Assembly (NCBI GenBank): GCA_002269645.1
Contig: NIVC01002568.1
Location: 47,112 to 111,111 of the forward strand
Direction: 5' to 3'
Length of the DNA stretch: 64,000 nucleotides
Origin: Macrostomum lignano
Lineage: Eukaryota
Numbering within the stretch: the first letter of the stretch is position 1; each line of letters starts with the position of its first letter. Position numbers and translations under genes: made by a program. Below the pieces are notes generated by a model that saw nothing but the letters and a program-made list of their open reading frames with translations, did no database searches and was not told the origin of the DNA. Below, in pieces: positions 9,272 to 59,629 of the stretch.

Positions 9272-12200
9272 TCAGCGAGGCTCCGCAGCCAGGAGTGGCG
9301 GCTGGTGGCAGAGCAGCGCCTCGGTCTGGCGCGACCAGAACAGCAGCAGGTCGGACCAGCAGTGGCGCATCCACAGCATGCCAAGCACCACGCACAGGTG
9401 CCAGTGGTTGTGGCTGTGGCCAGCGAAGTCGAAGCGGCCTTGGGTTGAAGAGACAGAAGGCATAATAAGAATATTGACTAGAGTTTTTGCCAAAAAGGGC
9501 AATATTTAAGCCGTCAATTTATTACCATAGAGATATGCAGTACACGATCGTAGCACAATGTTCTTTTAACAGCCTGATTTATTTTCAATGATGGACAAAA
9601 AAGCAACTTATAAAATGACCAAAATTAATAAAATATGAGCAGAATAATTTTTCTGTACATCTTATGTAGGTTTATATTTTAAATAGTAGTTTCTGAATAC
9701 CAGACTCAGTATTGTTTTAGTTGATGATTAAGATAATAAGTGCTATCTTAATAGCACTTGATGGATAGCTATCGATAACTATTGTTTGATAACTAGCTTA
9801 AAGCAAATACCATGGACCACAGGGACAAACTTCATGAAGCAGCTGTCGACGCAAAATACACTGGTCTACTTTTACTTGGATGTAACAGGCATTACATATT
9901 TTGGTGAAAAATTATTCTCATAAGATTTTGTTCTGCAGTTAAAATTGAGACAAGTGGACTGAGTTTCACAAAATACTTGCATGAAATGTTTCGCATTTTA
10001 AAGCTGCTAATAATAATAATAAAGTAAATAATACTACACACGTGGTATGTGTAAGATGCTCTAAAATCTCATCTCAGACCATCTATCCCATTGTGGAGTG
10101 CTTGAACGCACTCAATGAAAGGTTAGTCCGTTGCAATTTTAGATGCCAGCTCAAGCACTGGAATGGAGCCGGACCAAACCGAAAGCAGTCGATACCTTGT
10201 TGGACCAATCGACCAGAAGCGCCGAGACATCATCCCACCCTAGAAGCGCCGAGACATCATCCCACCCTAGAAGCACCGAGACATCATCCCACCCTAGAAG
10301 CGCCGAGACATCATCCCACCCTAGAAGCACCGAGACATCATCCCACCCTAGAAGCACCGAGACATCATCCCACCCTAGAAGCGCCGAGACATCATCCCAC
10401 CCTAGAAGCGCCGAGACATCATCCCACCCTAGAAGCGCCGAGACATCATCCCACCCTAGAAGCGCCGAGACATCATCCCACCCTAGAAGCGCCGAGACAT
10501 CATCCCACCCTAGAAGCGCCGAGACATCATTCCACTCTAGAAGCAACGAGACATCATCCCACCATTGAAGCAACGAGACATCATCCCACCATAGAAGCGC
10601 CGAGACATCAACCCACCCTTGAAGCGCCGAGACATCATCCCACCCTTGAAGCGCCGAGACATCATTCCACTCTAGAAGCAACGAGACATCATCCTACCAT
10701 TGAAGCGCCGAGACATCATCCCACCCTAGAAGCGCCGAGACATCATTCCACCCTAGAAGCGCCGAGACATCATCCCACCCTAGAAGCGCCGAGACATCAT
10801 CCCACCCTAGAAGCGCCGAGACATCATCCCACCCTAGAAGCGCCGAGACATCATTCCACCCTAGAAGCAACGAGACATCATTCCACCCTAGAAGCGCCGA
10901 GACATCATCCCACCCTAGAAGCGCCGAGACATCATTCCACCCTAGAAGCGCCGAGACATCATCCCACCCTAGAAGCGCCGAGACATCATCCCACCCTAGA
11001 AGCGCCGAGACATCATCCCACCCTAGAAGCGCCGAGACATCATTCCACCCTAGAAGCAACGAGACATCATTCCACCCTAGAAGCGCCGAGACATCATCCC
11101 ACCCTAGAAGCGCCGAGACATCATTCCACCCTAGAAGCGCCGAGACATCATCCCACCCTAGAAGCGCCGAGACATCATTCCACCCTAGAAGCGCCGAGAC
11201 ATCATTCCACCCTAGAAGCAACGAGACATCATTCCACCCTAGAAGCCGAGAATAGCAAAAAATCGTGAAGCAGCTTCAGAAAGAGTTTAAAGCAGACACA
11301 ATGAATTGGGTGGGACACTTGCAAACCAAGAATGGTCAAAGTGCAGACCATTGAATGTACTGAGGATTTATCTGAGAACGAGACATATTCGAGCACCGAG
11401 TGCTATCCTGATAGACTTCATGCGAACGTGTTTTCTTTAAGTCGGCGTGAAATCTCAACATAATCGGTTTGGACGGGAGCTTTGAGTCAGGCTTCATTAG
11501 GGCCTGACATCGCCTTAGTCAAAAGGGCTTTGCTAGCAGTACGCCAATAAATAAGATAGTGAAAACATCGCGCATTCTCACCTGGGAGGCAGCGCTCTGG
11601 AAACTGCGAGACATAGAAGCCGAAACCGAGCAGGCCGATTGCGTAAAGCGCAAGCACTTTGGGAAGAAAGTGCTGGAATGGGAAATTTCACTGCTTGTGT
11701 TCGCTGCATATATAATGGATAGTAAATTGGCTACAGGTCTGTGGGCACCCTGGCGCAACGCCTTTAGTGACATCAGGCAGCGCTGAGACGATTCTGCTGA
11801 CTCCTAAGCACAGATATTGTTCAAGCGCGCCAATACTGTACACTCTGTGCCTTGGGGGTTGGCCCTCCCCTCATGGCAAGCCCTCATTAATTTTCTAATC
11901 GCTGGAAATGTACACTCTGTGCCTTGGGGGTTGGCCCTCATGACAAGCCCTCATTGATTTTCTAATCGCTGGGAATGTACACTCTGTGCCTTGGGGGTTG
12001 GCCCTCATGGCAAGCCCTCATTGATTTTCTAATCGCTGGGAATGTACACTCTGTGCCTTGGGGGTTGGCCCTCATGGCAAGCCCTCATTGACTTTCTAAT
12101 CGCTGGAAATGTACACTCTGTGCCTTGGGGGTTGGCCCTCATGGCAAGCCCTCATTGACTTTCTAATCGCTGGAAATGTACACTCTGTGCCTTGGGGGTT

Positions 12201-15111
12201 GGCCCTCATGGCAAGCCCTCATTCACAAGGTTGGCTTTTATTTAAATCGTATGACAACCCCGGCCAATATTCGTACACAAGCTCCAAATTAATGTGGCCT
12301 TTCCCGGAATCGAATCAGGAATTCCCCTGAAGCTGCTCTGCCCCTTCATACTCGCCGCATACCTGCGGCAAAGCAATACCCAGCTTACCGAAACAAGAGG
12401 CGAAGAGATGCCGCCGCAGAGGTGGACCCAGTGCAGGGTGGGCAGAAGGCCGTAGCCCACCAGACAGCAGTACATGGGCAGCACAATGCGACGGAAGGCC
12501 CTGGACGATGTGCGCAGGCGCAGCGAGAAGTACAACACGGCAGCGCAAAGGCTGCAGCAGATGCACATGTACACCTGGCGCCAGTACTGCAGCAGAGAGG
12601 GCAATCAGTTGTTTAGTGAACACTTGCATATCAGATATAAAACGGCCCATTGAACTGCTTTTGAAGCTAAGGGGGTGATGGTGGGAGCATTTTATAAGCT
12701 CGAAAGTAGTTGCATCGTCTAAAAATGCTGCTTGATGAAAATTTTAACGATTTTGACTATGTAAAATTTATAGCTTCTGGATTCGACCGCAATTTTTGCT
12801 TTTGGCGATGTGAAATTTCTAGCTTGTGAAGTTTTGATCGCATCAAATTCACTGCCTTCGAGGATGTGAACTTTTTGAGCCTGCAAAGATCTTACCGGAT
12901 GGCAGCGGAATCCGAAGTGCACCGCGGGCAAATAGCAGCCGACGATGCCAACGCAGATGCCGGCCTGGTCCAGCGCCAGCCAGCGCTTGAACGCCCGCTG
13001 GGAGTGGCAGCGAAACGTGTGGTAGCCGGCCGAGAGCAGCATGCACGCCTGATGGGGCGGGGCGCAGTGAGGCATTGTGAATGAAATGCTTTAATAATCT
13101 GTTCTGATTTTGGTCCATCCTTTCTATTGGGTTCGACAATGCTTTCAGCGACGATAAAGTTGACAAGTTGGACAAGTTGACAAAGCAAAGTCAGGTCGAA
13201 CACTTCAAGTTTACCCAACAGTGTTGCCAAATCTGAGACTGGGTTGAAGGGCCGACTAGCCGTAGGCTTGAACTTGTGGTCTAATAGGGAGTATCTTATG
13301 TGCGGATTGACTTGATGTGTCTGAGGCGTCGCCTGCTAATTGCCAATCAATAAGGGCTCGATATCCGGAGTCCAGCGATGTAGGAGGGGAGGGGCGAGGA
13401 GGCAAGAGAGATTCTTACTCAAATATGAGCTCAGCTTTATGCATGTCTTTCAGCTGTTGGCGGTCGCATATGGGGAAAATCAGATGATGAGAAGTGCATT
13501 GAGAAGCACAGATAGACAATAAAAAAGGATTACACCTGCCCAGTTGGGTCAGATGTGCAACTGACAGCTCAGCCGCAGCTATTGCACGGCGCATCTGAAG
13601 GCTGCGTACGGCTGCTCAATCCAAAGACTGGGGGGCGGGGGGGGGTCCGCCACACACGCTCGATTGCCCCAGCTAATTCTGGTACCCATTTTACAGCTGA
13701 GTGGACTGAAGCAATGCAGAGTTATCTGTAAGTGTCTAGCTCAATTGCACAAATTGTTCCAGTACGATCGGGAATCGAACCCTCGACCTTCAAGTCGTGA
13801 GTCAAATGCTCTAACCACTAGGCTACACCCCATTGCAGATAGAAACAGCTAAATTTCACCAATTCAGTGCCAGCGCCAACCCAGGAGGCTCCCCAGGCTC
13901 ACCTGAAAGCAGAGCAGGGAAGCGGCCGTTACGACTCTGTCGCTGCGCTGCTCACCCCGAAGCCAGACAGGCTCGCAGAGATCCATCAGCATGAGCACAA
14001 AGAATAGAAAGAATGCCAGCAGATGTGACCAGATGTTGACTGTCTCATTGGTCCACAGGAACATGCTGGCAATGGTGCAAGTAGGCGAAAATGCATGCAA
14101 TTCAGAATAAACACTGGCGACCATCAGCCCATTTCGCCAACCCCTGAGCAGACGACGCTCAGCGCACACGCTGCATCTCGGTGGTTGGACGTCATGAGTA
14201 AAACAAATCGCCCACCTCCTGGCCAGCATTGCTGCGCCAACTCCAAAATTAATTTGGACGTGCAGCGAAATCGAATCAGGGAATTCCAAAGTGTACTGGC
14301 GAAATAGGAATGCTTCAGTTGTTAGCACAAAAGAATATACTTCCCAACAACTTTCTAAGATCATTTTAAAGCCGTTTAAAATCAATTCTAAGCCGTTATG
14401 CGTTTGGCCCAATGCGGTTTCACAAGCTTACCGACTGTCATTTCGGAAAGATCACTACTGCAGACTGACAAACTGGCCTACCTCTCCAATTTGCTTCTTT
14501 CTAAACGGATTTTCTCGACTAACTGCTCCAGTTCGAAAGTTGTCCATGGAACCCCCATTTGCAGATGGAATGCAGTCAAATAATTCGTGTAGAAACTCTC
14601 AGTACTTCTGTTTCATTCCGATTTTTTTTAGAATTCTAAACTTATCAGCCTCCAATCAGACAGCAACTTAATATGTATATTGGAAGTTCACACGATGATA
14701 AAATCCCTAGCTATTGCCCCGTCTCAAAGCGAAACCAGGTCTCCGAAAATTATTTCATAAATTTGAGTTGTGGCAGGCAACTCACCTCTTGAGGCACTGG
14801 AAGGCAGTCAGGTAGCTCGTGTAGCCATTTCTCAGATAGGCATTGTGCTGCAGGAAATGCGGTACATCGTCCAGCCTTCTTACTACAATTGGGTCGCCCT
14901 GGCAGGAGGCTGGTAGACTGCAGCGCTTCAACCTGAACAGGTCCTCCTCATTGACCTCCACATCCAGAATGAGGCAGCGGGATGAGCCATTGCGGCCTGC
15001 ATGCTTGTACTCTGTGCGGACTGAGGCTGGCATGGCAGCAGAGAGGAAGACAGGGTAGCTTAGCTGAACCTCTGAGGCAGGTGTGCACTCAAGTATTAGC
15101 AATGTTGGCAT
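9272..15111 (-). CDS. PAQR3: PAQR3-like progestin/adipoQ receptor; exons 15111-14786, 14065-13903, 13048-12896, 12586-12389, 11672-11582, 9438-9272
   Basis: PAQR motifs NETVNIWSH, SAGYHTFRCHS..LDQAGI, FYVSQFPERCLPGRFDFAGHSHNHWH. All six exons join in frame via GT-AG. Confidence 0.88.
10215..11246. repeat. 27-bp minisatellite, about 38 copies, in the last PAQR3 intron
   Basis: Unit GAAGCGCCGAGACATCATCCCACCCTA with a few recurrent variants. Confidence 0.97.
11837..12225. repeat. 67-bp minisatellite, about 6 copies, in PAQR3 intron 4
   Basis: AATGTACACTCTGTGCCTTGGGGGTTGGCCCTCATGGCAAGCCC... recurs at 11974, 12041, 12108. Confidence 0.95.
13521..13831 (-). mobile_element. tRNA-derived SINE in PAQR3 intron 2
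   Basis: Pol III A box TAGCCTAGTGG (13825-13815), B box GGTTCGATTCC (13781-13771), central CCACTCAGCTGTAAAATGGGTACC motif (13705-13681), ends in a T-run. Confidence 0.75.
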
Positions 15112-16014
15112 TCATCTAGCAAGTGGGCTTTTGAAAAATGAAATAGATGGAACCTTTATATGAAAATACTAATATGCAGTAGAATTCAGTTATTAAAGCA
15201 GCCAATGCTATACATGTTTTCCTTAATTTATAAATATTATAAATCATATTCATATATTAGATATCTTTGGCACCAAAGCTCATTTGACAAATTGTAGCTT
15301 AATATGAATATTAAGATGCTCCATTAAATATACTTTAAATAAACTTTCTATTCTCATCTTAAAAAATGTTAGAATTTGATAATGCCTATAATTATTTTAT
15401 CTTTTTAATTATTTACATTTAATAATCCAAGGTGATAACCTTGGAAAAACTACTTTTCTAATTTAGACTTTTTGTGGTATAAATTTGAATATCAATCTAT
15501 TATATAGCTTATATTGATCTACCACAATACACATTGCATGCCATTTGTGTATGCTCATAACTACACTTTCTTCAGTTGCACAGATATTTAAAAATAAAAT
15601 GCATCTTGTGTATGCTGACATTTTTAAATGCATGCCAGAAAATTTTGGCATGCACTATATCTTCTAGAGATAGGTATATACCATAGTCTGGATCATGCTA
15701 GATGCACATCTAAACAAAAATTGATAATTATAAATGCACGCCAAAAAAATTAAGTGTATGCCCATTTTTAAAACTCCACTAGTGTTGCAACATATGACCT
15801 ATTTAATGTTATAATAAAAATGACCTTTTTCATTGCATAATAAATCCTTTTGATAGATAATTTGGTTAATTTTCCTGCTTTTTGGCAAAACAATTTATAG
15901 TGAAAAATTGATATATGCAAAGATTTGTTTAAATGCCCTATTGTGAGCTTAAAAACCCAGAAAGTAGGAAATTTACATTCAAAAATGAACTTTGCCTCAA
16001 AAATGAAAAAAGCT

Positions 16015-17160
16015 AAGAAGGACAAGTTTTTTAAGTTAATCAATTCTACTCATGAGAATATCAAATTCACGATGGAGGGGGGAGGCAGAAGACTTCCTTT
16101 CTTAGACATTGACGTTGACGCCACCAATGAAACTATTTCGACCAGCGTGTATAGGAAACCTAGCTTTACCGGGCTTATGCTTAGGTTTGACACCTTGTGC
16201 CCTAGACAATGGAAAACTGGATTGATTCGTTGCTTTCTTCACTGGGCTTTTTCCACTTGCAGCTCTTGGAGACTTTTCCACAATGAAGTTGAAATCCTCA
16301 CCAATCTGCTCAGCTACAATGGCTATCCTAAGAACTTTGTAATGAAAATTGTCAACTCTTTTCTTAATGACAAACTGACTGAACCTACTCGGATGAAAGT
16401 TCGTGATTCCACCTCTGAATGTCCCTTGATCACTTTGCCTTACTTTGGTATTTGTTCTATAGAGTTTAAAAAGAAGTTAGAAAAGCTGCTCCGTAAAGAC
16501 TTAAACATTCAAATCTGTGTTGTGTTTCGCACCGAAAAGATTGCTAAGTTTGTCTGCAAGTTGAAATCCAGTGTTCCACATCCTCTCGCAGCTGGTGTCG
16601 TGTATAAATTTGTTTGCTCTGAGGACCAGAGCATCTCCTACATGGGAAAAACTAAACAACACTTATACACGAGGGTCAGAGAGCACTGGCTAAAAAACTC
16701 TGCTATTAACGAACACCTACTAACCTACAATTCTTGTTGTGAGGCTGAACCACACGAAATGATAAAGGCTATTGATTTTTGTAATAGAGATCACATGCTC
16801 TGCCTATTAGAAGCCCTGTACATTAAGACCAAACAGCCCACATTAAATAACCAACTTGCGATGGGTGGGGCTAGCTGTCAACTCAGAATTTTTTAGCTGA
16901 TTTGTCAATGACCGGACTGGCTTGAAACTGATATGCACTTTACCCAACCAATACTATATAAAAAAAATTGATTACTATGTACAAGTTTTAAACCATCAAT
17001 TAAAAACTCAATTCAACTACTCTTGTTACTCTCAACTATCTATATATACTGAATATTCGTTCAAATTGTTTCTTAAATAAAAAGACCCTGACAATGTCCT
17101 AATGCAAATAGACGAAATGCATCGGCAACTCAAATAATACTTCATGTTGATATTTACCTT
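16015..17160 (+). mobile_element. 5'-truncated Penelope-like element: RT thumb + GIY-YIG endonuclease (ORF to 16896) + 3' UTR
   Basis: IKFTME..LPFLDI..VYRKPSFTG (PLE RT C-terminus) and GVVYKFVC..SYMGKTKQHLYTRVREH (GIY-YIG). The first ~30 codons of ORF 15925 are flanking A-rich sequence. Confidence 0.9.
17084..17127 (+). ncRNA. Minimal type-I hammerhead ribozyme-like motif with a G8A core variant
   Basis: CC-CTGACAA-T-GTC(12 nt)GAC-GAA-ATGCAT-C-GG. Palindromic stem III and location in a PLE 3' UTR match the minimal PLE hammerheads. Confidence 0.6.
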
Positions 17161-35229: not shown

Positions 35230-38200
35230 TCAGGCACTCGCGTCCCGAGCCTGCCGCTTTTCCAGCATCTCGAGGGTCTCGCGGGCCCATTTAACAGCTT
35301 CAATGTCGTTGCCAACCTCCTGGACGAATTCTAATAGCACGGCATGGCCGCCCTCGGAGGCGAGCAGGGGCACGTACTTGTCGGGCAGGTGCTTGCACAT
35401 GCTCATGAGCGCCCAGGTTCCCCAGGCGTAGCTGGCCCTAGAGCGGCGGCACCGCAGCAGCCGCAGGATGGGCTGAAAGGAGCGATAATTGATCTGCCGG
35501 CTGAGGTTGCTGGTCGGCCAGTTGCGGATCACCTCGCTGACCTTGGCGTCCAGCTCTCGCTCCACCTTGGTGAGCTCTTTTTCCCGCCTGCTGTGCAGGC
35601 AGTGGGCCACAATTCCCGCCGCGTTGTAGGCGGCCTCGACATTATCTGCTGTCCAGCGGCTCAGGTACACCAGTAGGATGTCCGCGATCTCCCTGGACTC
35701 GCCAGTCAGCAGGTCCGCGGCCAGGCTCGGCACCTCGGACACGTTGCCCAGCAGCCCCAGCACATTCCGCATCAGCTCTTGCGAGGCATCCGGCGAAGTG
35801 GAGTGCACGCGGTGACAGTCGACAAGGCACTGCAAACCGCCACTCTGCATGAAGGCAGCGCAGTTTGGCTCACTCTCGTCCGTGATGTTCCACAGGATGC
35901 TCCAGGCTGAGCTCAGGCACTGCGCCTGCGGGGCTCCGGCAATCCGCCTGGGCGGGTTCAAGCAGTTCTGGATAAACTGCAGCGCCCGGGTGACCAGCCG
36001 GCACTCGCAGCCGACGAACTGCCGCTCTGGCTCGTCGAAAGAGATCGCCAAGTAGTTGATCACCGCCAGCACGTAGCGGATGGACTCGGGCTCTTCCTCC
36101 TCGCAGCTCTGGTCCAGCACGAACAGCAGCGACCGGAGCAGCTTCACTCTACGGGAAATGGGCGAGGATTCTCTGATGGGGCGAGGGCGAGGATTCTCTG
36201 ATGGGACGAGGGCGAGGATTCTCTGATGCGGATGAGGATTCTCGGATAGGGCGAGGGCGAGGATTCTCTGATGGGACGAGGGCGAGGATTCTCTGATGGG
36301 ACGAGGGCGAGGATTCTCTGATGAGACGAGAGCGAGGATTCTCTGATGAGACGAGGGCAAGGATTATCTGATGGGACGAGGGCGAGGATTCTCTGATGGG
36401 ACGAGGGCGAGGATTATCTGATGGGACGAGGGCGAGGATTCTCTGATGGGACGAGGGCGAGGATTCTCTGATGGGACGAGGGCGAGGATTCTCTGATGGG
36501 ACGAGGGCAAGGATTCTCTGATGAGACGAGGGCGAGGATTCTCTGATGGGACGAGGGCGAGGATTCTCTGATGAGACGAGGGCGAGGATTCTCTGATGGG
36601 ACGAGGGCGAGGATTCTCTGATGGGCGAGGGCGAGAATTTTCTCTGATTTACTGTACACTCAATGGCATTTGTGCTAAGCTATGCACAAATGATGGCGCA
36701 AATGCACACAGAAAAGTCGAAAAAGGATTAGCTCACCTGGAGCAGCTCATGATAGCCGCCTCAATTTCGTTATTCAGCAGCAGGAAGAGGGACAGCAGGA
36801 AGTTGCGTCTGGTCAGCGGGTCGGCCCGCCAGCGGTAGATGGAGGTGGCAATTACGTCCAGGCAGCGGCAGACTGTGTCGAAAAGGCCGGCCGGGCGGGC
36901 CTGCAGGTAGGAGCGGATGAGGTAGTAGATCGATGCGGAGGCCTGCAGGAACAGTGCCTCGAGCTTTTCGTCGGCCCAGACGAAGTCCTCCATGATGTCA
37001 AGCAGGCGGTGCAACAGGCGCAAGCCGCAGGCGGCGCTGTTGTCGGGGCCTGGCTGAGCGGGCAGCCGCAAGAACTGGAACAGCGAGCGCAGCACGATGG
37101 TCGCAGCCTGGGGGTCGCGGGCGAACTCGCGCAGCAAGCAGGAAAAGCCAGCAAGGCTGCGCTCGGAGCCGACGCGGTCAGCGCCATCAAAGCCATCAAG
37201 GCGGCTGGCCGCGCCAAACAGGCCGAGGTAGTCAAAGGCGGCGAGCTCGGCAGACAGGGCGGGAGCGGCATCGGCCAGGCTGGTGAACGATAGGTCGAGC
37301 CGGCGAAGGCGGGGCAGCCGCTGCAGCAGGCGGCGCAGGCGGTCGGCGGCATCGGCGAAGGGGAACAGCAGCGTCTCCGCGTCTGGCAGCGGGTCGTTGT
37401 GCGGTAGCCCGATGTCCAGCACCTCTAAAAGTGGGAACTTCTCGCACAGGGCATCCAAGCCGCTCGCGTCGGACTCGGACAGCTCGTCGAGGCGCGCGGC
37501 CACCTCGGTGTCGAAGTTGTACGTCTCCAGCAGCTCCGCCACCTGCAGCAGAGATTTGTGCACCGTTATCTTTGCCAGCTTTAGCGAGGGATGGCTATTT
37601 AGTCAGTTAAAGTGCAAACAGGTGCGTGAAATCGGGTTCATGACGGCCAGCTCACCGTGATGTCCTCGGAGTCGGCCAGAAACAGGGCGACGCAGCGGCG
37701 CAGGCCGAGGCAGCGCAGCGCGGGCATCTGCGGCGCCGCCAGCAGCTGTGCGGCCGTGATGCCGCTGCCGGCCAGGTCCAGCGAGACCAGGTTGGCGCAG
37801 ATGAAGCGAACGTCCAGGTCAGCCAGGGGGTTTGAGTCCGGGTGGGCTGGCAGGCGAGCCCGCAAGCAAGTGACGCGGTTAAAGCTGATGCGGTGGTCAG
37901 CCTTGATGAGATCCGGGTAGTGCGCGCCGATGTCCAGTGTGTGCAGCAGGGAGGCGAGGCGGCGTAGGTGCACGATGTAGGTGTCCAGCTTGGGCTCGAG
38001 CGCCAGGCCTTCGTACAGGTAGAGACTGGCGGGCGTGAGGTTGAGCAGGGCGGTGAGCAGCTCCTGCTGAGCGCCGGGGTAGGGCTCGTCCCCAAGGCTG
38101 GGCGCCGTGTTGCTAGGCAGCAGGTCCAGGCGGGGCACACAAGCGCCGCGGAACAGGGCCACCTGGCGGATGGCGGCGGCAGTGACGCGGACGGGCTGGT

Positions 38201-44423: not shown

Positions 44424-44669
44424 CTAGGGCCTATCATATAACAAATGTGAATATAAGGATTGTGCTCTAATAAGCTTTGATTAGGCCTATAAAATTTTTG
44501 TAATCACAACTATGTTTATTTCAATTCTCACTATTTTCCATTGGGTATTAGGCTATATAATAAAATTGATGCAAAATATAGGCATTGATGGCATAGTTCT
44601 AGTTTACTTCGTTATATTCCAACCCCCCTACCCTTGAATAGAGGGCAAAATAATTTAACGCAGTAAACT

Positions 44670-47531
44670 CAGGGTTTTTTTTTGTGCGCAGAGTGTGCGT
44701 ATGCACCCTAAATTTTAAAATCGCACCCTGAAATTAAAAAAGTAGGTGCGGTTTAGGTGCGGTCTTATAACCATTTTTCTTTAAAGGCTTAACCATGCTT
44801 AAGCTATTTTTTATGCACTGCCTTAAAATATGAAACAAAATAACTCTTTAAATCCTATTAAGTCATATAGATTATAGGCGATATAGCCTATAGCTATAGC
44901 CTTATGTAAGATATTAAAATATACATTCCCAGTTGTCTGAAATGTGAGCAATGTGAGGGTTTCACGAGAGATATTCAGACAAAGGCTCCCTAAAACACGC
45001 CCCGCACAGGGCCCCGAACTGCTACACATTATAACATTTTTTGTCAATGCAGTATTTGATTGCAAGGAAAAGTTAAAATAGTAATGGAATAAATATCTTT
45101 ATTTATTTTTTTAAATATTATTATTTTTTATATTCTCGTTTTCATTATTAAATTATAATATTATTATTAAAATCACTTATTGTTCACCGAATTTTATATT
45201 TCAAAGTAAAAAAAAACTAAATTTAATAAAAACTTGAAGCTTAACAGAAAACGCATTCTGAAGTGTCTTTAGTTATAGTCCAATTTGTTTTAATGTGTAG
45301 CGCTGCAGGGCGGTGCGGGGCATGTTTTAGGGAGACCCATTCAGACAGACATTCAAAATGATTGTCTGTAACTTTAAACAAAATTGACCCGCTTCAACCA
45401 TCTTTTTGGCAAATACTTACACAAGTGTTGGGCATCGAATAAGCTTTAATTTATTAACTGAAGTAAAAATCCTTCTGACATACATTGATTTAAAAATTGC
45501 TTAGCAACACTAGCTCTGATTAGAAATCGCTTTACTGTTGACTAAAATTGTTTTGATCGTAGCAGCCTAAAAGCAGATACTGGATTTAAAAATGCTTCAA
45601 TTTACTCTATATGCATGTCTCAGCTTTAAAATGACACCTCAGGCGTCGCAAAAGACAGCTTTGATGCTGAGATATTTGACACTAAACATGCATTGCTTTG
45701 CGCAATCTCACATTCAGAAATTTCACTGATTTTTTGTCGATATTTGTGCAGTTGCCATGTCCTTGTTTTTCATCAGAATCTTGTCAAATTCTAGTCATGT
45801 CTATACGCATGTCTCAGCTTTAAAATGACACCTCAGGCATTGCAAAAGACAGCTTTGATGCTGAGATATTCGACACTAAACATTGCTTTGCTCAAACTCA
45901 CATTTGGAAACTTCACTGATTTTTATTCAATATTTGTTCAGATGCTTGTCTACTTCTCCATTTATTAACCATCGCATGGAGCCTTGCTAACGTACAAGTG
46001 TATGTAGTTACAGTAAATGGGGTTTTTGTGACTCACTTAAACTTGTTTACGCATTCTGCAGCTATTCGCCGCCTTTCATTGGAGTGATTCATGGAGTCCA
46101 GTTGATAAATTTCCACAAATTGGACTGCTTCTACGTCAGATCTCAACATTTGGAACCGTCCTTGAACTATTTCAGAGTTAAGTGAGCTAATGGCATCAAA
46201 TGGAAGGCTAGTGCTCGTACTTGTAAGCGAAGCAGGTTCACAATTGAAATGGTTGTATTCATGGCCATGGGATCTAAACTGATCTGTTTTACTTTCACGA
46301 TCGCTTTGGTCTCAGAAGGAGCAGCAGTTGATGGACTGAGGTGAGAAGAAGATGTGTCACGATTTGAGCTGTTTTTAGAAAATATCTTTATTATCCAATT
46401 AAATATTTTCATGCGGCTCCTTAGGTTGTTCCGAATTCCGAGTCTAGAAGTCAAGACAGAAAAAAAGTTAAGAACTGCTACTGTAGTCCATAGGGATTGG
46501 AAAGCTTAGCAGTACATTAGAAATCGCCTGTTCAATCTAAAAAGTTTGAAGTACATATAGCTATTGGGTTGCAACAACAGTAGAAAAAATTCTTCCTTTT
46601 TATTTTATTCCCACCGCTTACCTCATTCCGATTTGGATAGCAGAATTGCCACGCAAAAAAAGTAAAAACATAATAATAAACTATTTGCTTCATATTAATT
46701 GCCACTGACTGCTAATAAACGCGACGTCAATTTCTCTCAATAACAGTTGGAACATGTTTCTCGTACACTCATATATTTATTTGAACTGCAAAGTGGTGAA
46801 AAAGTCATGATTGGTTGCCATATGTACAAATGTACACTCACAGACTCACTGACTCAGGTACAATCTATGCAATATAAAGGCAGGAATCATTAAAAAAAAT
46901 ACTTAAGACAGTTTAAGAGAAGTCCAGGTTTAAACTGGACATGACTAGAATTTGACAAGTTTCTGATGAAAAACAAGGACACGGCAGCTGCACAAATATC
47001 GACAAAAAATCAGTGAAATTTCTGAATGTGAGATTGCGCAAAGCAATGCATGTTTAGTGTCAAATATCTCAGCATCAAAGCTGTCTTTTGCGACGCCTGA
47101 GGTGTCATTTTAAAGCTGAGACATGCGTATAGAGTAAATTGAAGCATTTTTAAATCCAGTATCTGCTTTTAGGCTGCTACAATCAAAACAATTTTAGTCA
47201 ACAGTAAAGCGATTTCTAATCAGAGCTAGTGTTGCTAAGCAATTTTTAAATCAATGTATGTCAGAAGGATTTTTACTTCAGTTAATAAATTAAAGCTTAT
47301 TCGACGCCCAACACTTGCGCAAGTATTTGCCAAAAAGATGGTTGAAGCGGGTCAATTTTGTTTAAAGTTACAGACGATCGTTTCGAATGTCTGTCTGAAT
47401 ATCTCTCGTGAAACCCTCACATTCTAAACAAGACTCAAGAGAAATTGCACTCTGAGCCTTAAAATCGCACCTTGAAATTTGGCACAAGGTGCGATTTCGC
47501 ACCTTATCTCTGGCGAAAAAAAAAAACCCAG
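44670..47531. mobile_element. 2.86-kb non-autonomous hAT-like element with long internal inverted repeats
   Basis: Termini CAGGGTTTTTTTTT..CAGAG vs CTGGGTTTTTTTTT..CAGAG (reverse complement). Perfect TSD AGTAAACT at 44662-44669 and 47532-47539. Arms about 44950-45801 and 46938-47424. Confidence 0.85.
44982..45338. mobile_element. Mutator-like MITE nested in the left arm
   Basis: 26-bp TIRs (..CTCCCTAAAACA(C/T)GCCCCGCAC). 9-bp TSD ATTCAGACA at 44973-44981 and 45339-45347. Confidence 0.8.
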
Positions 47532-50149
47532 AGTAAACTAGAACTATACCGCATTGACAGATATAAGAATGTTGGTCTTAATTAAAAAAATGTCAATACT
47601 GTAATTTTTTTAATTAGTTAGGTCTATATAACAATATAGGCCTAATATAAATACTAAAATAGCAATGTTACTATTTAGCAATTGCCACAGCTAAAATGTT
47701 TTAAATAGGCCTAGGGACCTATTGAACATATTTTATTATTTTATATAAATAAAACAAATTTAGACCCTATTTAATTTGTTTATTCAGTATAGATTTTCGA
47801 ATGGGCCTATTACTAGCAATTGCTTAGTTAAAACTTAAATAAAGGTAAAATAGATATTAAATTTATATGTACGCTTAACTTTGCCTAGGCCTAGGCCTAG
47901 TCTTTTTTCTCATTAGCTAAGTGCTTAGATACTAAAACTACCATAGATAGTTTATATCCATCATATCTTCATATCCATTGATCAAATAGATCAAATCAAT
48001 CCCCAAAAGGATCTTCCTACTGTACTGCTCTGGCTAAATCTCTAAGCCCTATTCATTAATCCATATACTGATATACACTACACTGCACTAGCAGGCCTAC
48101 CTGACAGGCTGACACTAAGTGGTGAGTTTCAACCTATGTAACTAAATGGACTCAAAGGATCAAAAATAATGTTTTTCTATAATGGGGCTTCTTTTATCAT
48201 GAAAGAAAAATTAAAGTGATAAAAATGCTTAGGACGTAGATCCGACAAGTGCCATAAAGCCATGAATGAATTATTTAGCAAAGGATTCTAAGAAATCTGC
48301 GCGCAAACCTGAATTTCCCTTTAAAAAACAACAAATCAATTTTTTTGGGAAAATGAAGCCATTTGGCTTTCAGTTTTTTACTTTTGTTGAAAAATGAATC
48401 AGCGGCTACTATTTTCGGGACTTCGTGCAGGCTGAAAGTTGGCCCCAAAATGCATGTCCAAAGTGGAATAAGGTAAGTCTCAGAAATTTAGAAATTCTCA
48501 AAATTCTAAGATGCAGGAGAGGAGATAATGCGATAGATAATGCGACACATTAAATGCAATAGGGACGCATCAGGATTAGCAACGGAATAAAAACAACTGG
48601 TTTAAATTAAAAGACATTTGTTGTGAAGTGAGCTGTACGTGAACACTGGACAAATCATTTACACATGTACATGTATGTACACTGTATAGTACTTCTATTT
48701 CCATGATCGTAAATTTACGAGTACGTGTACATGTACTTCCCGAAGCAGTTTGCGGTGACAGCGAGCGTGTCTCGTGGTCAAAGACCGTCTTGCTCTATGT
48801 TTTGTTAAACATTGGGGGCTTCTATTTCCTGTCGATAATATTAGCTGACGGCCGCAACCCGCAAGCAGATTTTACTCGTGGCGATGTAATATATATAATA
48901 GTGCATTTCGAGCTGTTACCTTTTGTTGGTGTTGGAGGTTTTTGCTGCTTTTGGTCTTCGGAATTAGTTCAAACCTTCCGACCCCGTATCCGAAAGCCTG
49001 CCGCTAACAGAAACAGCTATAGCTCACAGACCACCGAATACCTATCGGGCCAAACAGATCAAGTCACATGCAGCTTCACCGCCACATCGCTGTCTCAAAG
49101 CGTCACGCCTCCCCGCTACTTAATTAGATGCTGCACTGGATAGGTGTTGTTGCATGTTGTGTATTTTTAATACCTCATTTAAGATCGTAAGATTAACTAA
49201 GTAATGTCTCTGGGAAAAGTTTCTTTAGGGTTGTGCATGGGGTAAAATATTTACAGTCAGGTAAAGCAAAAAAACAAAAAAATTCCCTCAATCTGTTCAG
49301 TCTGTAGTTAATAAATTTTTTTTGCATCCGTATCGTCTAAAAAGCAGCACGGATTTGCAAGACAGGGCGTGTCCGGGTCTGCTTGCACGTTGCTCTCGCG
49401 GCTACAAGGTACTACATGAATATCAAAGTAAAAATATTAGAATCAGCTTTGCTTTTGCTTTCTTATCTTGGATGGAAAGGAAATTATATTATCGTCTCTG
49501 TATAAAACAAATAGAAGTGTAAAATATCCAAGCTGGTATGGTAATACTGGTAGTGCAGAGATGTAATGCAGTCGCTACTGAGTAGTGTATAGTCGCTACT
49601 GACTGCGCGCAGTACAGCAGACGTACGTACCCCGCGGGTTATCAATTTAAAGTACCTTATTTTGCTTGCCTATTCGCATCAAAGCAAACTTTTTTACTGC
49701 GACGCAGAAAGCGCAAATACGAGCGTAGCGCCATGCCAGTACATTCGGAGGTGTACGTACACAGGCATATCGCATACTGTACTGGGCATGAGTATTTTTT
49801 CTGTCCTCTCTGACTGAGGGCGGGGGGATGCTGTCTCTGTACAAAGTTTGGATTTATAGTGTGTCACATTCAACTGATTGGCAAAAAAGTATTACGTTCG
49901 TTTAACTGTAAAAATTCTTACCCACAATTAATTATAAGCTCGTAGGAGATCAGCTTACTCTGTGGGTATTTAAATTTTGACACACTGCTTGCCGAAGCAT
50001 GTCAAGTGTAAGTAATCTAGTTGAAACCTTGATTTTTTAACAAGGTACCAAATCATTTGGTTAAAAATGTTGTATAAATCATATGTAAGACTGCATAAAA
50101 AGCTACGTGTAAATATTTTCATGTACGACAGCTGCCCCTTCTCTTTCAG

Positions 50150-53100
50150 AGACCCCCACCACTACAGGATTTCGAACGAATGCTCCGGGAGCACCTGGAG
50201 GAGCTCATGGAGGGAGTTCAAAAAAAGCGGAAAGATGCCAGTTCCACCAGCAGCAGCGAAGATCCGACTTCACCAGCAGTTAAATCCTTTCTGAAGGCGG
50301 CTGCCTCCGGTGATCGTCGGCGGTGCCTGTCCTTCATGGATGGCGGCGGCGACCCAAGCGCTCGAGGCAAAAAGAGTCTTACCGCACTGCACCTTGCAGC
50401 ACATGAAGGACACACGGATGTGATCAGGGAGCTGCTAAGACGAGGAGCGGAAATCGATGCCACAGACGAAGATGGTGATACGCCACTCATATCCGCCGTC
50501 ATCAACAAAAAGCAGGAGCCGGTCGAACTTCTCATTGAGAAGGGGGCCAATGTGGCTCACATCAACAACAAGGGCCACACAGCAGCGGATATCGGTCTGA
50601 TGAAGAGGAGTCTTGTTATCGTCACAACACTGGAGAACGTCAGGCGCTGCCTGCAATTCGACTCGGTGGTGCACGAGAAGACCCTCATGACCGCTGCGCA
50701 GGAAGGTAACGTAAGAATTATCGACTTCTGGTTGAAGAATCACCCGGACCGCAAAGCCTGCAACCATAAGCTCGTCCAGAGCCGCACAATGGCGTTTATT
50801 GCCGCTCTAAATGGGCACCTGGACATTATGCTTCTGCTGAACAAGTACAAGGCTGACTTTGAGCTCACGGACGATCGTGGACACACGCCACTGTTTTGCG
50901 CTGCTCAAAACGATCACTTTGAAGTCGTAAATTTCTTACTGGAGAAGCGCTGCAACATAAACCACACGAGCATCACTGGTCGAACTCCGATTTTTTCGGC
51001 AGTGAACAACGGGCACGACGACATTGTGCGGCTGTTAATTCGCAGTAACGCGAATGTCAACCAGGCAGACGAGGAGGGAACAACGCCACTAGAGTGCGCA
51101 ATCAAGCAGGGCTCTTTGCCCATCTTCCACATGCTCATTGATGCAGGAGCTCGGATTGATCACATCGAGTTTAACGGCTATGACTTCGCCATGATTGCGG
51201 CTTCAAACCAGCAGGTCGACATGCTTAAAGAGCTACGCGCAATGGGCTTGTCAATGAAGCAGGTCAACAAGAAGAATGGTGAAACCGCACTCCTTGGTGC
51301 CTGCCAGGTGGGTCCTGAAGAATCGGTCGGCTTTCTGATCTCCGAGGGCAGCGATCTGAATCATCAGAACAAGCGCGGTGTGTCTCCTGCTTTGAGGGCT
51401 GCCTACAACGGACATTTTGTGATCCTGATGGCTTTGGGAGAGTCTGGAGCTAAACTGGATTTGCCGAACAAAATAAATGAGACCGCCATTTTATGCGCGG
51501 CACAGAAGAGCTCCGTTGACATGGTTCAATACCTACACGGAAAAGGGTGCAACATCTCCGTGAAGGATGACAACGGCAAGACTCTGGCTTGGTACGCAGC
51601 AAAAGAGGACAACATAGAGCTTCTTGAGTTCCTAGCTAAAGTGGGTGCTCCTCTGGATACTCCGGACACCGATGGCAACACGCCATTGATGCGGGCTGTG
51701 AAGGCGGACGCGAGCCCCGAGACAGTGCGATTTCTCATGAGCCGCGGCTGCAGTGTGGGCAAGCCGAACCAGAAAGGGGAGAACGCTGTGGATATCGCAA
51801 AGAAGCGCAATCACGAAGAGCTCCTGAAGGTTCTGCAGAAATCTGGTTCCCGCGAAAAGCCAAGTCCAAGTAGAAGACCTGGCGGCGCCAATCAGAGACA
51901 GGAGTAATTTTTTTGCTTTTTTATGCCTTTAAAATTATGTTCACCTGTGTTATGTATTCAATGATATCCAAAAATCGCATTTCTAGGTCCACAGAGGATC
52001 ATCTGGACGCCACATTTACAGACTGGGACTACATCTATGATGAGAGACGTAAGAAAAAGTTGATCGGCGAAGGGAACTTCGGCAGGGTCTACGAGGCGCA
52101 CACAAACAAGGGCCAAACAATTGCAGTGAAAGTAACCAAGCTCAAGGGTGCCAAGAACGATAGAGTCGTTCAGAAAGCCATCGACTTGGAGATGAAAGCC
52201 GTTGAAGTTTTGAAGGCCATTCGTCACCAAAATATAGCCATCTTTTTAAAGTCCGAACAGAAGGATGGAGCCGTATACGTCTTCACTGAGTTGATTGACG
52301 GCATGAGTCTGGCTGACCACTTGAAGGATCGGCAGTCTTTTGAAGAGTCGGAAATCAGAAGCTATGCTTCCCAGGTAAATATGTAGATTTATATTTTTGA
52401 TGGTGATGCTGATGTTGAATAAATCACAGAACTGATTAACCATGCTTGACATGCTTCTTCAGATTTGTTCAACGCTGGATTTTCTGCATACACGCAAGCC
52501 TGCAATTCTGCACAGGGACATCAAATGCTCCAACATTATGTTGACAAAGCGGGGTGTAATCAAGTTGATTGATTTCGGACTCGCTAAAGAGATCGTCACT
52601 TCAACAATCGCAGCAGTGACTGAGAGCCAGTGCGGCACCTGGTATTACCTTGCTCCGGAACTGTTCAGCAGCCAGGCGCATGTTTCCTACACACCTAAGA
52701 CGGACATCTGGGCGTTTGGGTGCACTATCTTCGAAATGGCAGAAGGCGAGCCTCCAAACAGAGACAAGAGGGAACAGCAGATTCCCAATGTGCTCAAGGA
52801 AATGCAGGAAATGCCTCTGCCATCAAAAAAATACTCTTCTGACATGCGCGAATTTTACCGTCACTGTGTGGCGAAGAATCCTGAGCAGAGGTTCACCTCA
52901 ACTGAGCTTCTGAAGCACCGGTTTCTGCGAAATGTCGAGAGGCCCAAAGCTGCAGCTGGGGCTGGGGCTGGGGCTGGTGCTAGGGCTGCGTCCGAACCCG
53001 CCGCACATTATCTCGACCCCAACTTCACAAAGTGGGACATCATCTGTGACGATGACAACAAGAAGAGGCCCATCGGAGAGGGTGGCTTTGGCAAGGTTTA

Positions 53101-53951
53101 CAAGGCCTACACAGATAAGCACCAGTTCGTGGCTGTAAAGATTGTCACAATGAAGGGCAACGATCCCAAGAGGTACAAAAGAGCAATCGAGCAGGAAAGG
53201 AAAGGTATAGAAATTTTGAAGACCGTCCGACATCCGAATATCGTTGTGTTCCTAAAATCCGAGCTCGATGACAGTGGTCAGTTCTGCATCTTCACTGAAC
53301 TCATCGCCGGAATCAGCCTCTTTGATTTGATGAAACGGCAGAGGAAGCCGTTTGAGGAGTCCGGAATAAAGAAGTTTTCTCAGCAGGTAACGCTGCACCT
53401 GAGTAGCAATATTAGTAGCATGAAATAACTAAATTATTTTTATGAAAACACATCAAATCAGCAAATATTGGTTCACTTCACAGATTTGCGCGGCCCTCAA
53501 CTTCCTGCACAGACGGAGGCCGGCCATCCTGCACCGGGACATTAAGTGTTCCAATGTAATGCTCACTCATGAGGGCATTGTCAAGCTGATCGACTTCGGC
53601 CTAGCTAAAGAAATCACCACATCGAAAATTGCCTACATCAGCATGAACCAGTGCGGCACTCCCTACTTCATGGCGCCAGAGCTGCACAGCGCGGAGGGCA
53701 ACGCCCAGTACACACCCCAGTCCGATGTGTGGGCCTTCGGCTGCACCGTTTTCGAGATGGCAGAAGGCAAGCCGCCGAACAGCCACCTGCTGCCAATGCA
53801 GATCCCACGCTTCTTCCACAAGTACGAGATGCCCGACATTTCAGCAAAAGTGTCCAATGAGCTGCGCAACTTCTACCGCTGCTGCGTTGTAAAGGAACCC
53901 GAGGCGAGGATGGATACCACCGACCTCCTGGAGCACGCCTTCCTTGCCTAA
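50150..53951 (+). CDS. Ankyrin-repeat protein with two tandem STE/MAP3K-like Ser/Thr kinase domains; exons 50150-51903, 51987-52374, 52463-53386, 53484-53951 (about 1177 aa, start codon uncertain)
   Basis: About 15 ANK repeats. Both kinases have GEGxFG, (I/V)[17 protein letters not shown] and D(I/V)WAFGCT. Junctions are in frame (phases 2, 0, 0). Confidence 0.8.
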
Positions 53952-54123
53952 GTTGGGCCCTCACTTTTTCAGCAGCAACAGAGTTCAACTATAGCTATCT
54001 GTTGAAGCACAATTCCATGAGATTTTCTGGATTTATTATACAAGTGGAAAAGTATTCGAAAAAAACTAATTCCCAGGTGTCAACTTATTTGACTCGTAGT
54101 TTTTACATCTGCTGTGAAAAATC

Positions 54124-55370
<1,247 letters not shown>

Positions 55371-58079: not shown

Positions 58080-59629
58080 TGCTCGAGCCCCCCCATTCTA
58101 GAAGCGGAGTCGCTCAGCAGCTGCATCTGACCAGGAAGGTGGAACGCCTGGAGCTGAATTCCCGACGTGAGGCACACGAGAGCAACGGTCTGATAGATGC
58201 GAATGAGCAGAGGATGCCGACAGGACAGCTTATTGACCATGCCATTATTGAGCAGTGCTATCCGAGTAAATCACAACGCGGCTGTTCCTAAGCTGCTCGC
58301 GGAAGCGCAGGATGGTAAGCAGCGGAGCCAGCGCCTCTTTGTGGTTGATGCGAAGGTCGCGGAACTTGCTCTCGAAGTCCTTCTCCCAGCTGAAGTACGT
58401 CCAGTCATTGAATTCGCTGCCAAAGACGATGCCAGCAGCACCCTCGCAACTGCTATCAGATTCGATGGCCACAAGTTGACGAAAACGGGGGCGAATGACC
58501 GTCGGCGGCAGAGAACTCACGACGCGCAGCCACCAGAGGAAGAGGTTGCGAAGCTCAGATGGCAGCCGGGTGTCCATTCTGTAGCTGAGGATGTCGAAGA
58601 GCGGACGCAGGAAAGGATGCAAAAGCCTGTTGATCTGGCTGAGCCAGCACAGCTTTCGGGCCAGTTTTTCGAGCTGCTTCAGCTTAACAACGTCACGTGA
58701 CAGGCAATCGTTCAGCAGTTTCCTAATGTCGTCTTTCTTGTTGCTTGGAAGTGACAGAGTGTCGTTCACAATGTCAACCAGCACGCCGAGAAACACAACG
58801 TGTTGAGCTGGAGCCACGGTCTTCTGCCGGTTGATGTCGAAGCCTAAGTTCTGCAGTAGCTTAACCAGATAATTAAAGGCCTCCTGAGCCGCTTCTTCAG
58901 TATCAGTGGCTACTGCCCAGTCGTCCAAGTAGTTGACGGTAGCTGTGAAGCCAATGCTGAGCATGTGGCGCTTGATGCCGGCCAATAAGCGATGGAAAAT
59001 TTCACATGACGCTCGAGCACCAAAGGGCAACCGGGTGTCAACGAGTACCGAGTCATCGCTGTCGGCAGCAAACCGCCAGCTGAGGCCCGTGAGCACCTGG
59101 TCGTCTGGGTGAATACCGACGGAACGATAGGCCTGCTTGAGGTCGATTTTGCCGATAAACGAGCTTGGGCGAAGATAGCGGTTCAAGTCTTGGACAGAGG
59201 CGAAGCGCAGCCCCTTTCCTGCTCATAGCTGTCGTTGACGGAGGACCCCGAAGGTCTAAAAAGGTCATGAATGACCCGGACACTGCCGTCAGATTTTGGA
59301 ATCGCCCCGATGGCGTTCATCATGACAGGGCCATTGGCGAGCTGCAGGCGGCCGAGACGGAGCTCCTCGGCGAGCTGTTCATCAACCTGCTTGGCTTGGT
59401 CCAAGGCTGAGCGGTAGTTGGCGGAGCAGGCAAGAGAAGGCGGCGACCTATTGACGAGCCGAAAGCCGTAACTAAGGCCGCTGCGAAAAAAATTTTCGTC
59501 TTGGTCACCCAGAAGCAGCGGCTCCCAGGCGGCAAGGTTGATGTTGGACGACAGAGCGCGGCGCGGTGGAGAGAGCAGGGTGGGAGCAGGGCAATGAGCA
59601 GAGGGAGGCAAGATAAAAGGCGACGGCAA
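58080..59629 (-). pseudogene. RT-RNase H of the element, with two frameshifts (about 59185 and 58245)
   Basis: NYRSALDQ..EELRLGR, IGAIPKSDGSVRVIHD, KIDLKQAY, LPFGARASCEIF, NYLDDW, IESDSS, INHKE, AFHLPG..SDSASR. Confidence 0.85.

Follow-up and report, generated by a model that had tools for sequence, protein, structure and literature searches.

A Predicted Ankyrin-Repeat Protein with Two Tandem, Paralogous Kinase Domains in the Flatworm Macrostomum lignano

Introduction

Several protein families carry two kinase folds in a single chain, and it is against these that we set Mlig002250, a gene of Macrostomum lignano in which an ankyrin repeat (ANK) array precedes two adjacent kinase domains, hereafter kinase 1 (K1) and kinase 2 (K2). 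The gene lies in a stretch of 64,000 nucleotides (nt), called here the window (assembly GCA_002269645.1, contig NIVC01002568.1, positions 47,112 to 111,111 of the forward strand). The copy in the window, Mlig002250g4, occupies NIVC01002568.1:97110-101062; all other coordinates are those of the window unless a contig or locus is named. RSK/MSK, JAK, and GCN2 also have two kinase folds per chain, one of which regulates the other. However, RSK/MSK pair an AGC with a CAMK kinase and JAK and GCN2 a pseudokinase with a kinase, whereas the Mlig002250 domains are paralogs with 55% identity. Neither the N-terminal AGC and C-terminal CAMK arrangement of RSK/MSK nor a domain stripped of its catalytic residues, as in JAK and GCN2, was found in Mlig002250, the K, HRD, N, and DFG residues being present in both kinases. 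Tandem kinase folds that originated by duplication or fusion and form lineage-specific families are also typical of the plant tandem kinase proteins (WTK1/Yr15, Rpg1, Sr60/Sr62). These are, in contrast, RLK/Pelle-type proteins without an ANK array, usually combine a kinase with a pseudokinase, and have an immune role that has been shown genetically; Mlig002250 shares their tandem folds but neither the RLK/Pelle origin nor the pseudokinase, its domains being STE-like with their motifs kept. Among animal proteins, obscurin, SPEG, and UNC-89 each carry a pair of kinase domains that belong broadly to one type, and were overlooked in a preliminary description of this DNA that took animal two-kinase chains always to pair different kinase types or to include a pseudokinase. 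They are, however, giant muscle proteins with no ANK array, whose CAMK/MLCK-like kinases lie hundreds of residues apart with Ig/Fn domains.

The order of an N-terminal ANK array followed by a kinase fold is shared with RNase L, to which Foldseek aligns Mlig002250 over about 650 columns covering both parts, but with low template modeling (TM) scores (0.20-0.33). In RNase L, nine ANK repeats precede a pseudokinase and a KEN RNase domain, whereas no KEN domain of the RNase L/IRE1 type follows the kinases of Mlig002250, which ends at K2 with no further Pfam domain. Outside Macrostomum, the nearest named kinase domains are those of MAP3K19 (YSK4), which has a C-terminal kinase like Mlig002250, and of plant MAPKKK1/MEKK-type STE11 kinases. 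MAP3K19-type proteins differ in having one kinase, a canonical Glu in helix alphaC, and, where ANK repeats are present, only two to four of them, far from the kinase. The likeness to MAP3K19 is not exclusive, the STE20 kinases MST3 and STK25 as well as ASK1 scoring equally among solved structures, and need not mean orthology. In the MAP3K19 of a frog, Pelodytes ibericus (P0258), and a mole-rat, Fukomys damarensis (P0340), we observed two to four N-terminal ANK repeats; since some vertebrate MAP3K19 proteins carry such repeats, the pairing of ANK with a MAP3K19-type kinase may be older than the flatworm family. The oomycetes Saprolegnia (P0079) and Achlya (P0256) also have single predicted proteins that combine ANK repeats with two or three kinases, but there the repeats alternate with the kinases, which are of the TKL type, and the proteins share neither lineage nor origin with Mlig002250.

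Results

Gene Structure of Mlig002250

The spliced coding sequence of Mlig002250g4 is 3543 nt long and encodes 1180 amino acids (aa) in five coding exons on the forward strand, to which all features of the gene given below belong, separated by GT-AG introns. It was read from 49800-54400, where canonical introns connect four long ORFs. The strongest sequence-only evidence for a single two-kinase protein is coding exon 4 (52463..53386; 924 nt, aa 718-1025), which contains the C-lobe of K1 (HRD 734, DFG 754, APE 781), the linker, and the N-lobe of K2 (GEGGFG, K943, E962/G965). An open reading frame (ORF) at 52442-53428 in the ORF listing spans this exon without a stop, and because the K1 C-lobe, linker, and K2 N-lobe share one open exon, the two kinases form one protein. 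The linker (52937..52996, aa 876-895) is Ala/Gly-rich, predicted to be disordered, and coded by a (GCTGGG)n microsatellite at 52955-52988 (period 6, 5.7 copies; Tandem Repeats Finder), which suggests that it derives from repeat or noncoding sequence turned into exon after an internal duplication.

The remaining exons complete the chain on both sides. Coding exon 1 (49999..50007) comprises just 9 nt, ATGTCAAGT, followed by the donor gtaagt, and supplies the start codon and Met-Ser-Ser; the resulting N-terminus, MSSRPPPLQ, is the same in GenBank PAA56824.1/P0376. Coding exon 2 (50150..51903, aa 4-588) encodes an acidic, Ser-rich N-terminus, 16 ankyrin repeats, and a Pro/Arg/Ser-rich tail. It is followed by intron 2 (51904..51986; 83 nt, GT..AG, phase 2), which separates the ANK array from the kinase module, with its donor GT at 51904-51905 (last exon base 51903) and its acceptor AG at 51985-51986 (first exon base 51987). 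If this intron is retained the frame ends at a TAA at 51905-51907. Coding exon 3 (51987..52374, aa 588-717) holds a conserved pre-kinase motif, LDxxFxxWD, and the N-lobe of K1 (GEGNFG, K636, alphaC E656/A659). Intron 3 (52375..52462; 88 nt, phase 0) lies within K1 directly before ICSTLDFLH, and intron 4 (53387..53483; 97 nt, phase 0) within K2 directly before ICAALNFLH, so that both occupy the matching position of their domains, preceding IC(S/A)xL(D/N)FLH. Coding exon 5 (53484..53951) encodes aa 1026-1180, with the C-lobe of K2 (HRD 1042, DFG 1062, APE 1089), and the TAA stop; the protein ends directly after the K2 fold, as do the single-kinase paralogs. The preliminary description had correctly read, to within one base, a phase-2 donor and acceptor joining the ANK array in frame to K1, and its architecture and place for the gene stand; it had missed the 9-nt first exon, the introns at 52375-52462 and 53387-53483, and the continuous 924-nt exon.

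Our gene model shows 0 differences from GenBank PAA56824.1 (BOX15_Mlig002250g4, "hypothetical protein"), and the identical 1180-aa model has been available under that label in GenBank/UniProt since the Mlig_3_7 annotation of 2017. The gene, which the preliminary description took as the best candidate in the window for an undescribed system, is therefore not absent from databases: it is already catalogued, yet uncharacterized. A full-text literature search for "Mlig002250" gave no match, searches of the literature on Macrostomum with ankyrin and kinase and on tandem kinases with metazoa found no description of the ANK-kinase family, and none of the three gene identifiers looked for is listed in the supplements of PMC5816591.

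The GenBank annotation is a genome-guided assembly of RNA-seq transcripts (StringTie and TACO with a de novo transcriptome) and not an ab initio prediction. M. lignano has many polycistronic precursors, a class that makes up almost 7% of its assembled transcripts; in the annotation these were split at the positions of trans-splicing and of poly(A) addition, and TransDecoder was used to call ORFs (PMC5730564). Because the annotation was built from RNA-seq assemblies, the splice junctions and the continuity from ANK array to both kinases have indirect transcript support. Exact look-ups for transcript contigs of Mlig002250 returned genomic contigs alone. Independent support for the join of ANK array and kinase comes from P0003, a 79%-identical ortholog of the sister gene P0002, which is encoded as ANK plus kinase on intron-less contigs of 3.1-3.2 kb from two sequencing runs. 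Three copies of Mlig002250 (g1, g2, and g4) each encode 1180 aa and a fourth, g5, encodes 830 aa. The contig of g2 is about 98% identical to the window, a value that fits the known redundancy of the M. lignano assembly (PMC5730564). Within the window itself, no second ANK-kinase copy was found with tblastn.

Ankyrin Array and Kinase Domains

The ankyrin array covers aa 45-570 (about nt 50273-51850, inside exon 2) and is recognized by Pfam, by a repeat hidden Markov model (HMM), and by AlphaFold. Ank_2 matches in eight stretches (E 3.9e-88), Ank and Ank_4 match as well, the repeat HMM counts 13 repeats plus degenerate ones, and AlphaFold folds the region into 16 ANK helix pairs with a predicted local distance difference test (pLDDT) score above 90. 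The array is thus a tandem 33-residue helix-turn-helix solenoid of the ankyrin-repeat type, with the repeat solenoids of AnkB and AnkR as its best Foldseek matches (E 1e-30). Overall, the fold search returned only generic ANK solenoids and, at low TM-score, RNase L.

Both kinase domains match the Pfam profile PF00069 (Pkinase), in two stretches (E 4.9e-119; 397 bits against a gathering cut-off of 31.7), and a family HMM gives the two domains scores of 497 and 528 bits. Their motifs run in parallel: the Gly loop is GEGNFG in K1 and GEGGFG in K2, the beta3 Lys is K636 and K943, HRDIKCSN stands at 734 and 1042, DFG at 754 and 1062, and APE at 781 and 1089. The best solved-structure matches are MST3/STK24, STK25, SLK, and ASK1, at about 130 bits, with NEK7 close behind, while among named sequences from other genera MAP3K19/YSK4 and plant MAPKKK1 match best, at about 35-38% identity. 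By these matches, the kinases appear to be STE-group and broadly MAP3K-like.

The helix alphaC departs from this canonical picture. In ungapped alignments to STK24 and STK25, the column of the alphaC Glu is occupied by Ala659 in K1 and Gly965 in K2, and a MAFFT alignment with MAP3K19 and plant MAPKKK1 again places Ala659/Gly965 there (K1 site, aa 656-661, nt about 52189-52206; K2 site, aa 962-967, nt about 53195-53212). Ala or Gly is found in this column in most family members. Three positions further upstream stands a Glu (E656/E962) that does not vary within the family and fits the helical i+4/i+7 pattern if alphaC is one turn longer, and in one clade (P0126, P0294, P0124, and P0290) Glu is present at both positions.

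For the whole chain, AlphaFold predicts three well-folded bodies joined by two disordered linkers (aa 569-610 and 874-899, pLDDT below 50) with no confident mutual arrangement. No fixed interface between K1 and K2, or between the ANK array and a kinase, is predicted, the model having a predicted TM score of 0.45 and disordered linkers and being built from an alignment that was shallow for K1.

Set against the preliminary description, these results agree on the STE/MAP3K-like kinase type, on the Gly loop, catalytic Lys, HRDIKxxN, DFG, and APE of both kinases, all of which we see, and on a linker after K1 leading to K2. The array is likewise upheld, but its count of "about 15" repeats becomes 16 by AlphaFold. 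The two kinases, reported as complete, do keep their catalytic motifs but have, where the alphaC Glu would canonically stand, Ala in K1 and Gly in K2.

Origin and Constraint of the Kinase Pair

Identity between K1 and K2 is 55% at the protein level and 61% at the DNA level. Their synonymous sites are saturated (synonymous divergence, dS, 1.69 by LWL85 and undefined by NG86; nonsynonymous divergence, dN, 0.33-0.35), and the internal duplication is therefore old. Saturated dS rules out a recent duplication, and the 61% DNA identity of the kinases together with three agreeing contigs rules out an assembly artifact. A neighbor-joining tree built on 45 kinase domains places K1 and K2 together as sisters, with 55% bootstrap support, beside P0002/P0003. 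The best match of K1 is K2 (54.6%) and that of K2 is P0002 (58.6%). With P0002 as outgroup, Tajima's relative-rate test counts 46 changes unique to K1 against 15 unique to K2 (p = 7e-5). K1 departs from 11 of the 90 columns conserved in the family and K2 from one of the 90. Nevertheless, K1 retains 79 of these 90 columns and every catalytic motif despite the age of the duplication, which argues for selection on K1 itself. Copies g4 and g2 differ by 19 synonymous and six nonsynonymous substitutions, giving a dN/dS of 0.089 (ANK 0.10, K1 0.10, K2 0.07), and divergence is 2.2% in introns and 0.7% in exons.

The sequence comparisons make a strong case that an ancient duplication, in tandem, of a two-exon kinase module within the gene gave rise to the second kinase, and an equally strong one that K1 evolves under purifying selection, although about three times faster than K2. 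K2 looks like the ancestral copy. In the simplest history, for which the sequence likewise speaks strongly, the stop codon of the first copy and the intron upstream of the second disappeared after the module had been duplicated, repeat-derived sequence (the GCTGGG repeat) was turned into the linker, and the upstream copy then diverged faster than the downstream one.

The Macrostomum Ankyrin-Kinase Family

In its ANK array, its LDxxFxxWD motif, its intron positions, and a C-terminal kinase with an identity of ~45% or more, Mlig002250 conforms to the Macrostomum ANK-kinase family. An exhaustive search with K2, which merges relatives more than 50% identical into a single representative, together with word-index searches recovered about 40 M. 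lignano clusters that consist of ANK repeats and one C-terminal kinase and are 45-59% identical to the query. All close relatives found belong to Macrostomum, identity falling to about 35% outside the genus, and the lineage-specific character proposed at the outset is thus borne out; the kinase paralogs amount to a Macrostomum-specific expansion of about 40 clusters. In the published orthogroup table, as far as covered here, orthogroup OG0000013 comprises 73 genes of this family from four Macrostomum species, with expression, in the sole such information obtained, scored as "non-specific" by body position, and that portion of the table does not list Mlig002250 itself (Brand et al. 2020, PMC7336406).

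The other family members examined have a single kinase each. The single-kinase paralogs BOX15_Mlig024438 (P0002) and Mlig023526 (P0004) resemble Mlig002250 in ANK array, LDxxFxxWD motif, and kinase type, are 53-59% identical to its protein, and have an in-kinase intron at the same position. They stop, however, after one kinase, whereas Mlig002250 has an additional, faster-evolving kinase between the ANK array and the ancestral kinase. P0002 has its kinase intron at the position seen in Mlig002250; its ANK exon apparently ends just before LDxxFxxWD, roughly where intron 2 of Mlig002250 lies, and its N-lobe exon was not recovered. A copy of this closest single-kinase paralog, Mlig024438g1, is found at NIVC01001141.1:165403-173438 (locus L005), at a distance of about 150 kb from Mlig002250g2, which lies on this contig as well (3899-27850, locus L001), so that a P0002-type gene and Mlig002250g2 are linked. 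Two fragment searches for orthologs of the tandem gene in other species returned only M. lignano paralogs and P0003; both also missed the gene's own cluster, P0001, and one of them P0002 and P0003, so that these negatives are uninformative and not readable as absence.

Multi-kinase proteins are plentiful in sequence databases: of the 290 proteins then collected, 122 have two or more kinase domains, their sources being oomycetes, amoebae, plants, and metagenomes. The combination of ANK repeats with at least two kinases occurs among the 290 only in Mlig002250, in the two oomycete proteins, and in M. lignano P0166. Mlig009993 (BOX15_Mlig009993g1, P0268/P0135), from a sister clade, has two ANK-like repeats followed by a kinase and a pseudokinase: the first kinase is intact (HRD, DFG), and the second reads HRN, GFG, and SPE and has no Gly loop. 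Its exons lie at 12162-15280 of locus L007 (NIVC01001483.1:57826-79108, reversed), with an intron that connects the two kinase folds at the precise point where the first one ends. Three kinase domains are present in P0121, which stems from an older annotation. Thus, judging from Mlig009993 and P0121, and also from P0166, tandem kinases recur in this lineage.

Genomic Context

Starting 173 bp past the stop codon of Mlig002250g4, a (TAGA)311 microsatellite without imperfections extends over about 1.25 kb (54124-55369), and the g2 contig aligns to the window through this stretch. Upstream of the gene, about 3 kb of AT-rich sequence (window ~44600-47550) is absent from the 98%-identical g2 contig (L001 5389-5383), probably through an insertion or deletion between the duplicated copies. 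Elsewhere in the window, Pfam matches were obtained for ORFs resembling an Nramp fragment (7378-8148, forward), cytochrome P450 (23117-24628, reverse; E 1.6e-95), and a ZER1-like C-terminal domain (35230-36360, reverse; E 1.2e-59). Two others, an ORF with a GIY-YIG domain (15925-16896, forward) and a reverse-transcriptase fragment (58245-59186, reverse), are probably mobile elements.

Discussion

We hold the gene structure and evolutionary history of Mlig002250, as described above, with high confidence. The fuller reading that we favor, namely one transcribed gene for a beads-on-a-string protein of 16 ANK repeats, K1, and K2, formed by internal duplication and with a proposed regulatory tethering of its kinases, seems to us reasonably probable. 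By analogy with other ANK-kinases, the array may act as a platform that binds partners or ligands and localizes the protein, and the MAP3K-like output would come from K2. Activation of MAP3K and STE20 kinases normally proceeds by dimer-driven trans-autophosphorylation of the activation loop, and an active paralogous kinase tethered on a linker of about 25 residues could provide a built-in activation partner. K1 would then be an intramolecular activator or regulator of K2, or might offer a second substrate specificity, and the pair would not amount to a full two-tier cascade. We put forward this role of K1, as a tethered and active regulatory or activation partner or as a second specificity, as a tentative proposal. 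The sensor with its self-contained kinase cascade, possibly immune or stress related, that the preliminary description had proposed would be at most speculative: the three parts have no fixed predicted arrangement, and the literature searched yielded no functional data on an immune role.

Several considerations weigh against the fuller reading. The transcript support for Mlig002250 is second-hand, by way of the annotation method. The bootstrap value for K1 and K2 as sisters is no higher than 55%, and the relative-rate test presupposes that grouping; the dN/dS values, in turn, are based on just 25 substitutions. With Ala or Gly in the alphaC column, kinase activity may hinge on the upstream Glu or be atypical. 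Finally, the AlphaFold alignment is shallow for K1, and the absence of a predicted K1-K2 interface is weak evidence.

Among other explanations, K1 might be an emerging regulatory pseudokinase or decoy, engaged in binding, sensing, or scaffolding, with K2 as the sole working enzyme, after the pattern of JAK JH2, the GCN2 pseudokinase, or the pseudokinase of plant tandem kinase proteins. Its roughly threefold faster evolution (46 against 15 unique changes) and its departures at 11 of 90 family-conserved columns, against one of 90 in K2, are in line with this, the more so as they include K to E624, L to H699, P to S705, and GTPxFMAPE to GTWYYLAPE, and the same genome has a clear kinase-pseudokinase tandem, Mlig009993, in a sister clade. 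Yet these departures are mostly conservative (V/I, M/L, F/Y), K1 has kept its Gly loop, K636, and the other catalytic motifs including APE in spite of saturated divergence, and its dN/dS of 0.10 between copies does not exceed that of the ANK array or K2, and we regard a K1 on its way to inactivity as unlikely, if worth keeping in mind. A related possibility extends the loss to the whole family, whose members would be catalytically atypical or inactive without the canonical alphaC Glu and would serve as ATP-binding scaffolds held by the ANK array. Ala659 and Gly965 do stand in the alphaC-Glu column when compared with STK24, STK25, MAP3K19, and plant MAPKKK1, and most paralogs have this feature. 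However, the invariant upstream Glu (E656/E962), with the i+4/i+7 hydrophobic pattern kept, may be the functional Glu of a longer helix, one clade has Glu at both positions, and the other catalytic residues are conserved across some 40 paralogs, which would be unexpected for dead kinases; a family of inactive scaffolds is in our judgment improbable.

The fusion itself could also be an artifact of the gene model, either because the ANK and kinase parts are separate genes of a trans-spliced polycistronic unit or because two adjacent kinase genes were merged. Polycistronic precursors are indeed common in M. lignano, at almost 7% of assembled transcripts (PMC5730564), older ab initio models hold probable merged genes (P0121, P0166, and P0293), and the evidence from transcripts for the exon joins of Mlig002250 is, as said, indirect. 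But ordinary splicing cannot split the kinases into two genes when the K1 C-lobe, linker, and K2 N-lobe lie in one 924-nt exon, and the same structure on three contigs, with 61% DNA identity between the kinases, excludes an assembly duplication. The deposited model, although it comes from transcripts cut at trans-splice sites, still covers all parts, the kinase part lacks a separate start-codon context where exon 3 begins, and P0002 and P0004 combine ANK and kinase in one protein, as does P0003 on its intron-less contigs. An artifact of this kind is accordingly very improbable. By analogy with plants, one could lastly view the ANK-kinase expansion as a receptor-like stress repertoire, in which variable ankyrin arrays would sense biotic or abiotic stress with a MAP3K-like kinase as output, and Mlig002250 as an animal counterpart of the plant tandem kinase immune receptors, K1 being a sensor or bait that switches on K2. 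Both parts of this view strike us as quite doubtful; if it were true, the Mlig009993 tandem would make the sensor arrangement convergent and recurrent.

The value of the finding is limited in that the gene is already catalogued, its domains are ordinary, and no phenotype is linked to it. Nevertheless, returning to the reading that we favor, a pair of adjacent, paralogous, and by their sequence apparently active kinases in one animal protein is uncommon, and the saturated synonymous sites indicate that the pair has been retained for a long time. Mlig002250 thus lends itself as a natural experiment on how the covalent tethering of a second kinase affects MAP3K-type activation, be it through intramolecular trans-activation, regulation, or a new specificity, in an animal that has RNA interference and transgenesis and in which the single-kinase paralogs are built-in controls. 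More broadly, the family of about 40 clusters with variable ANK arrays represents an uncharacterized, lineage-specific signaling expansion in a regeneration model.

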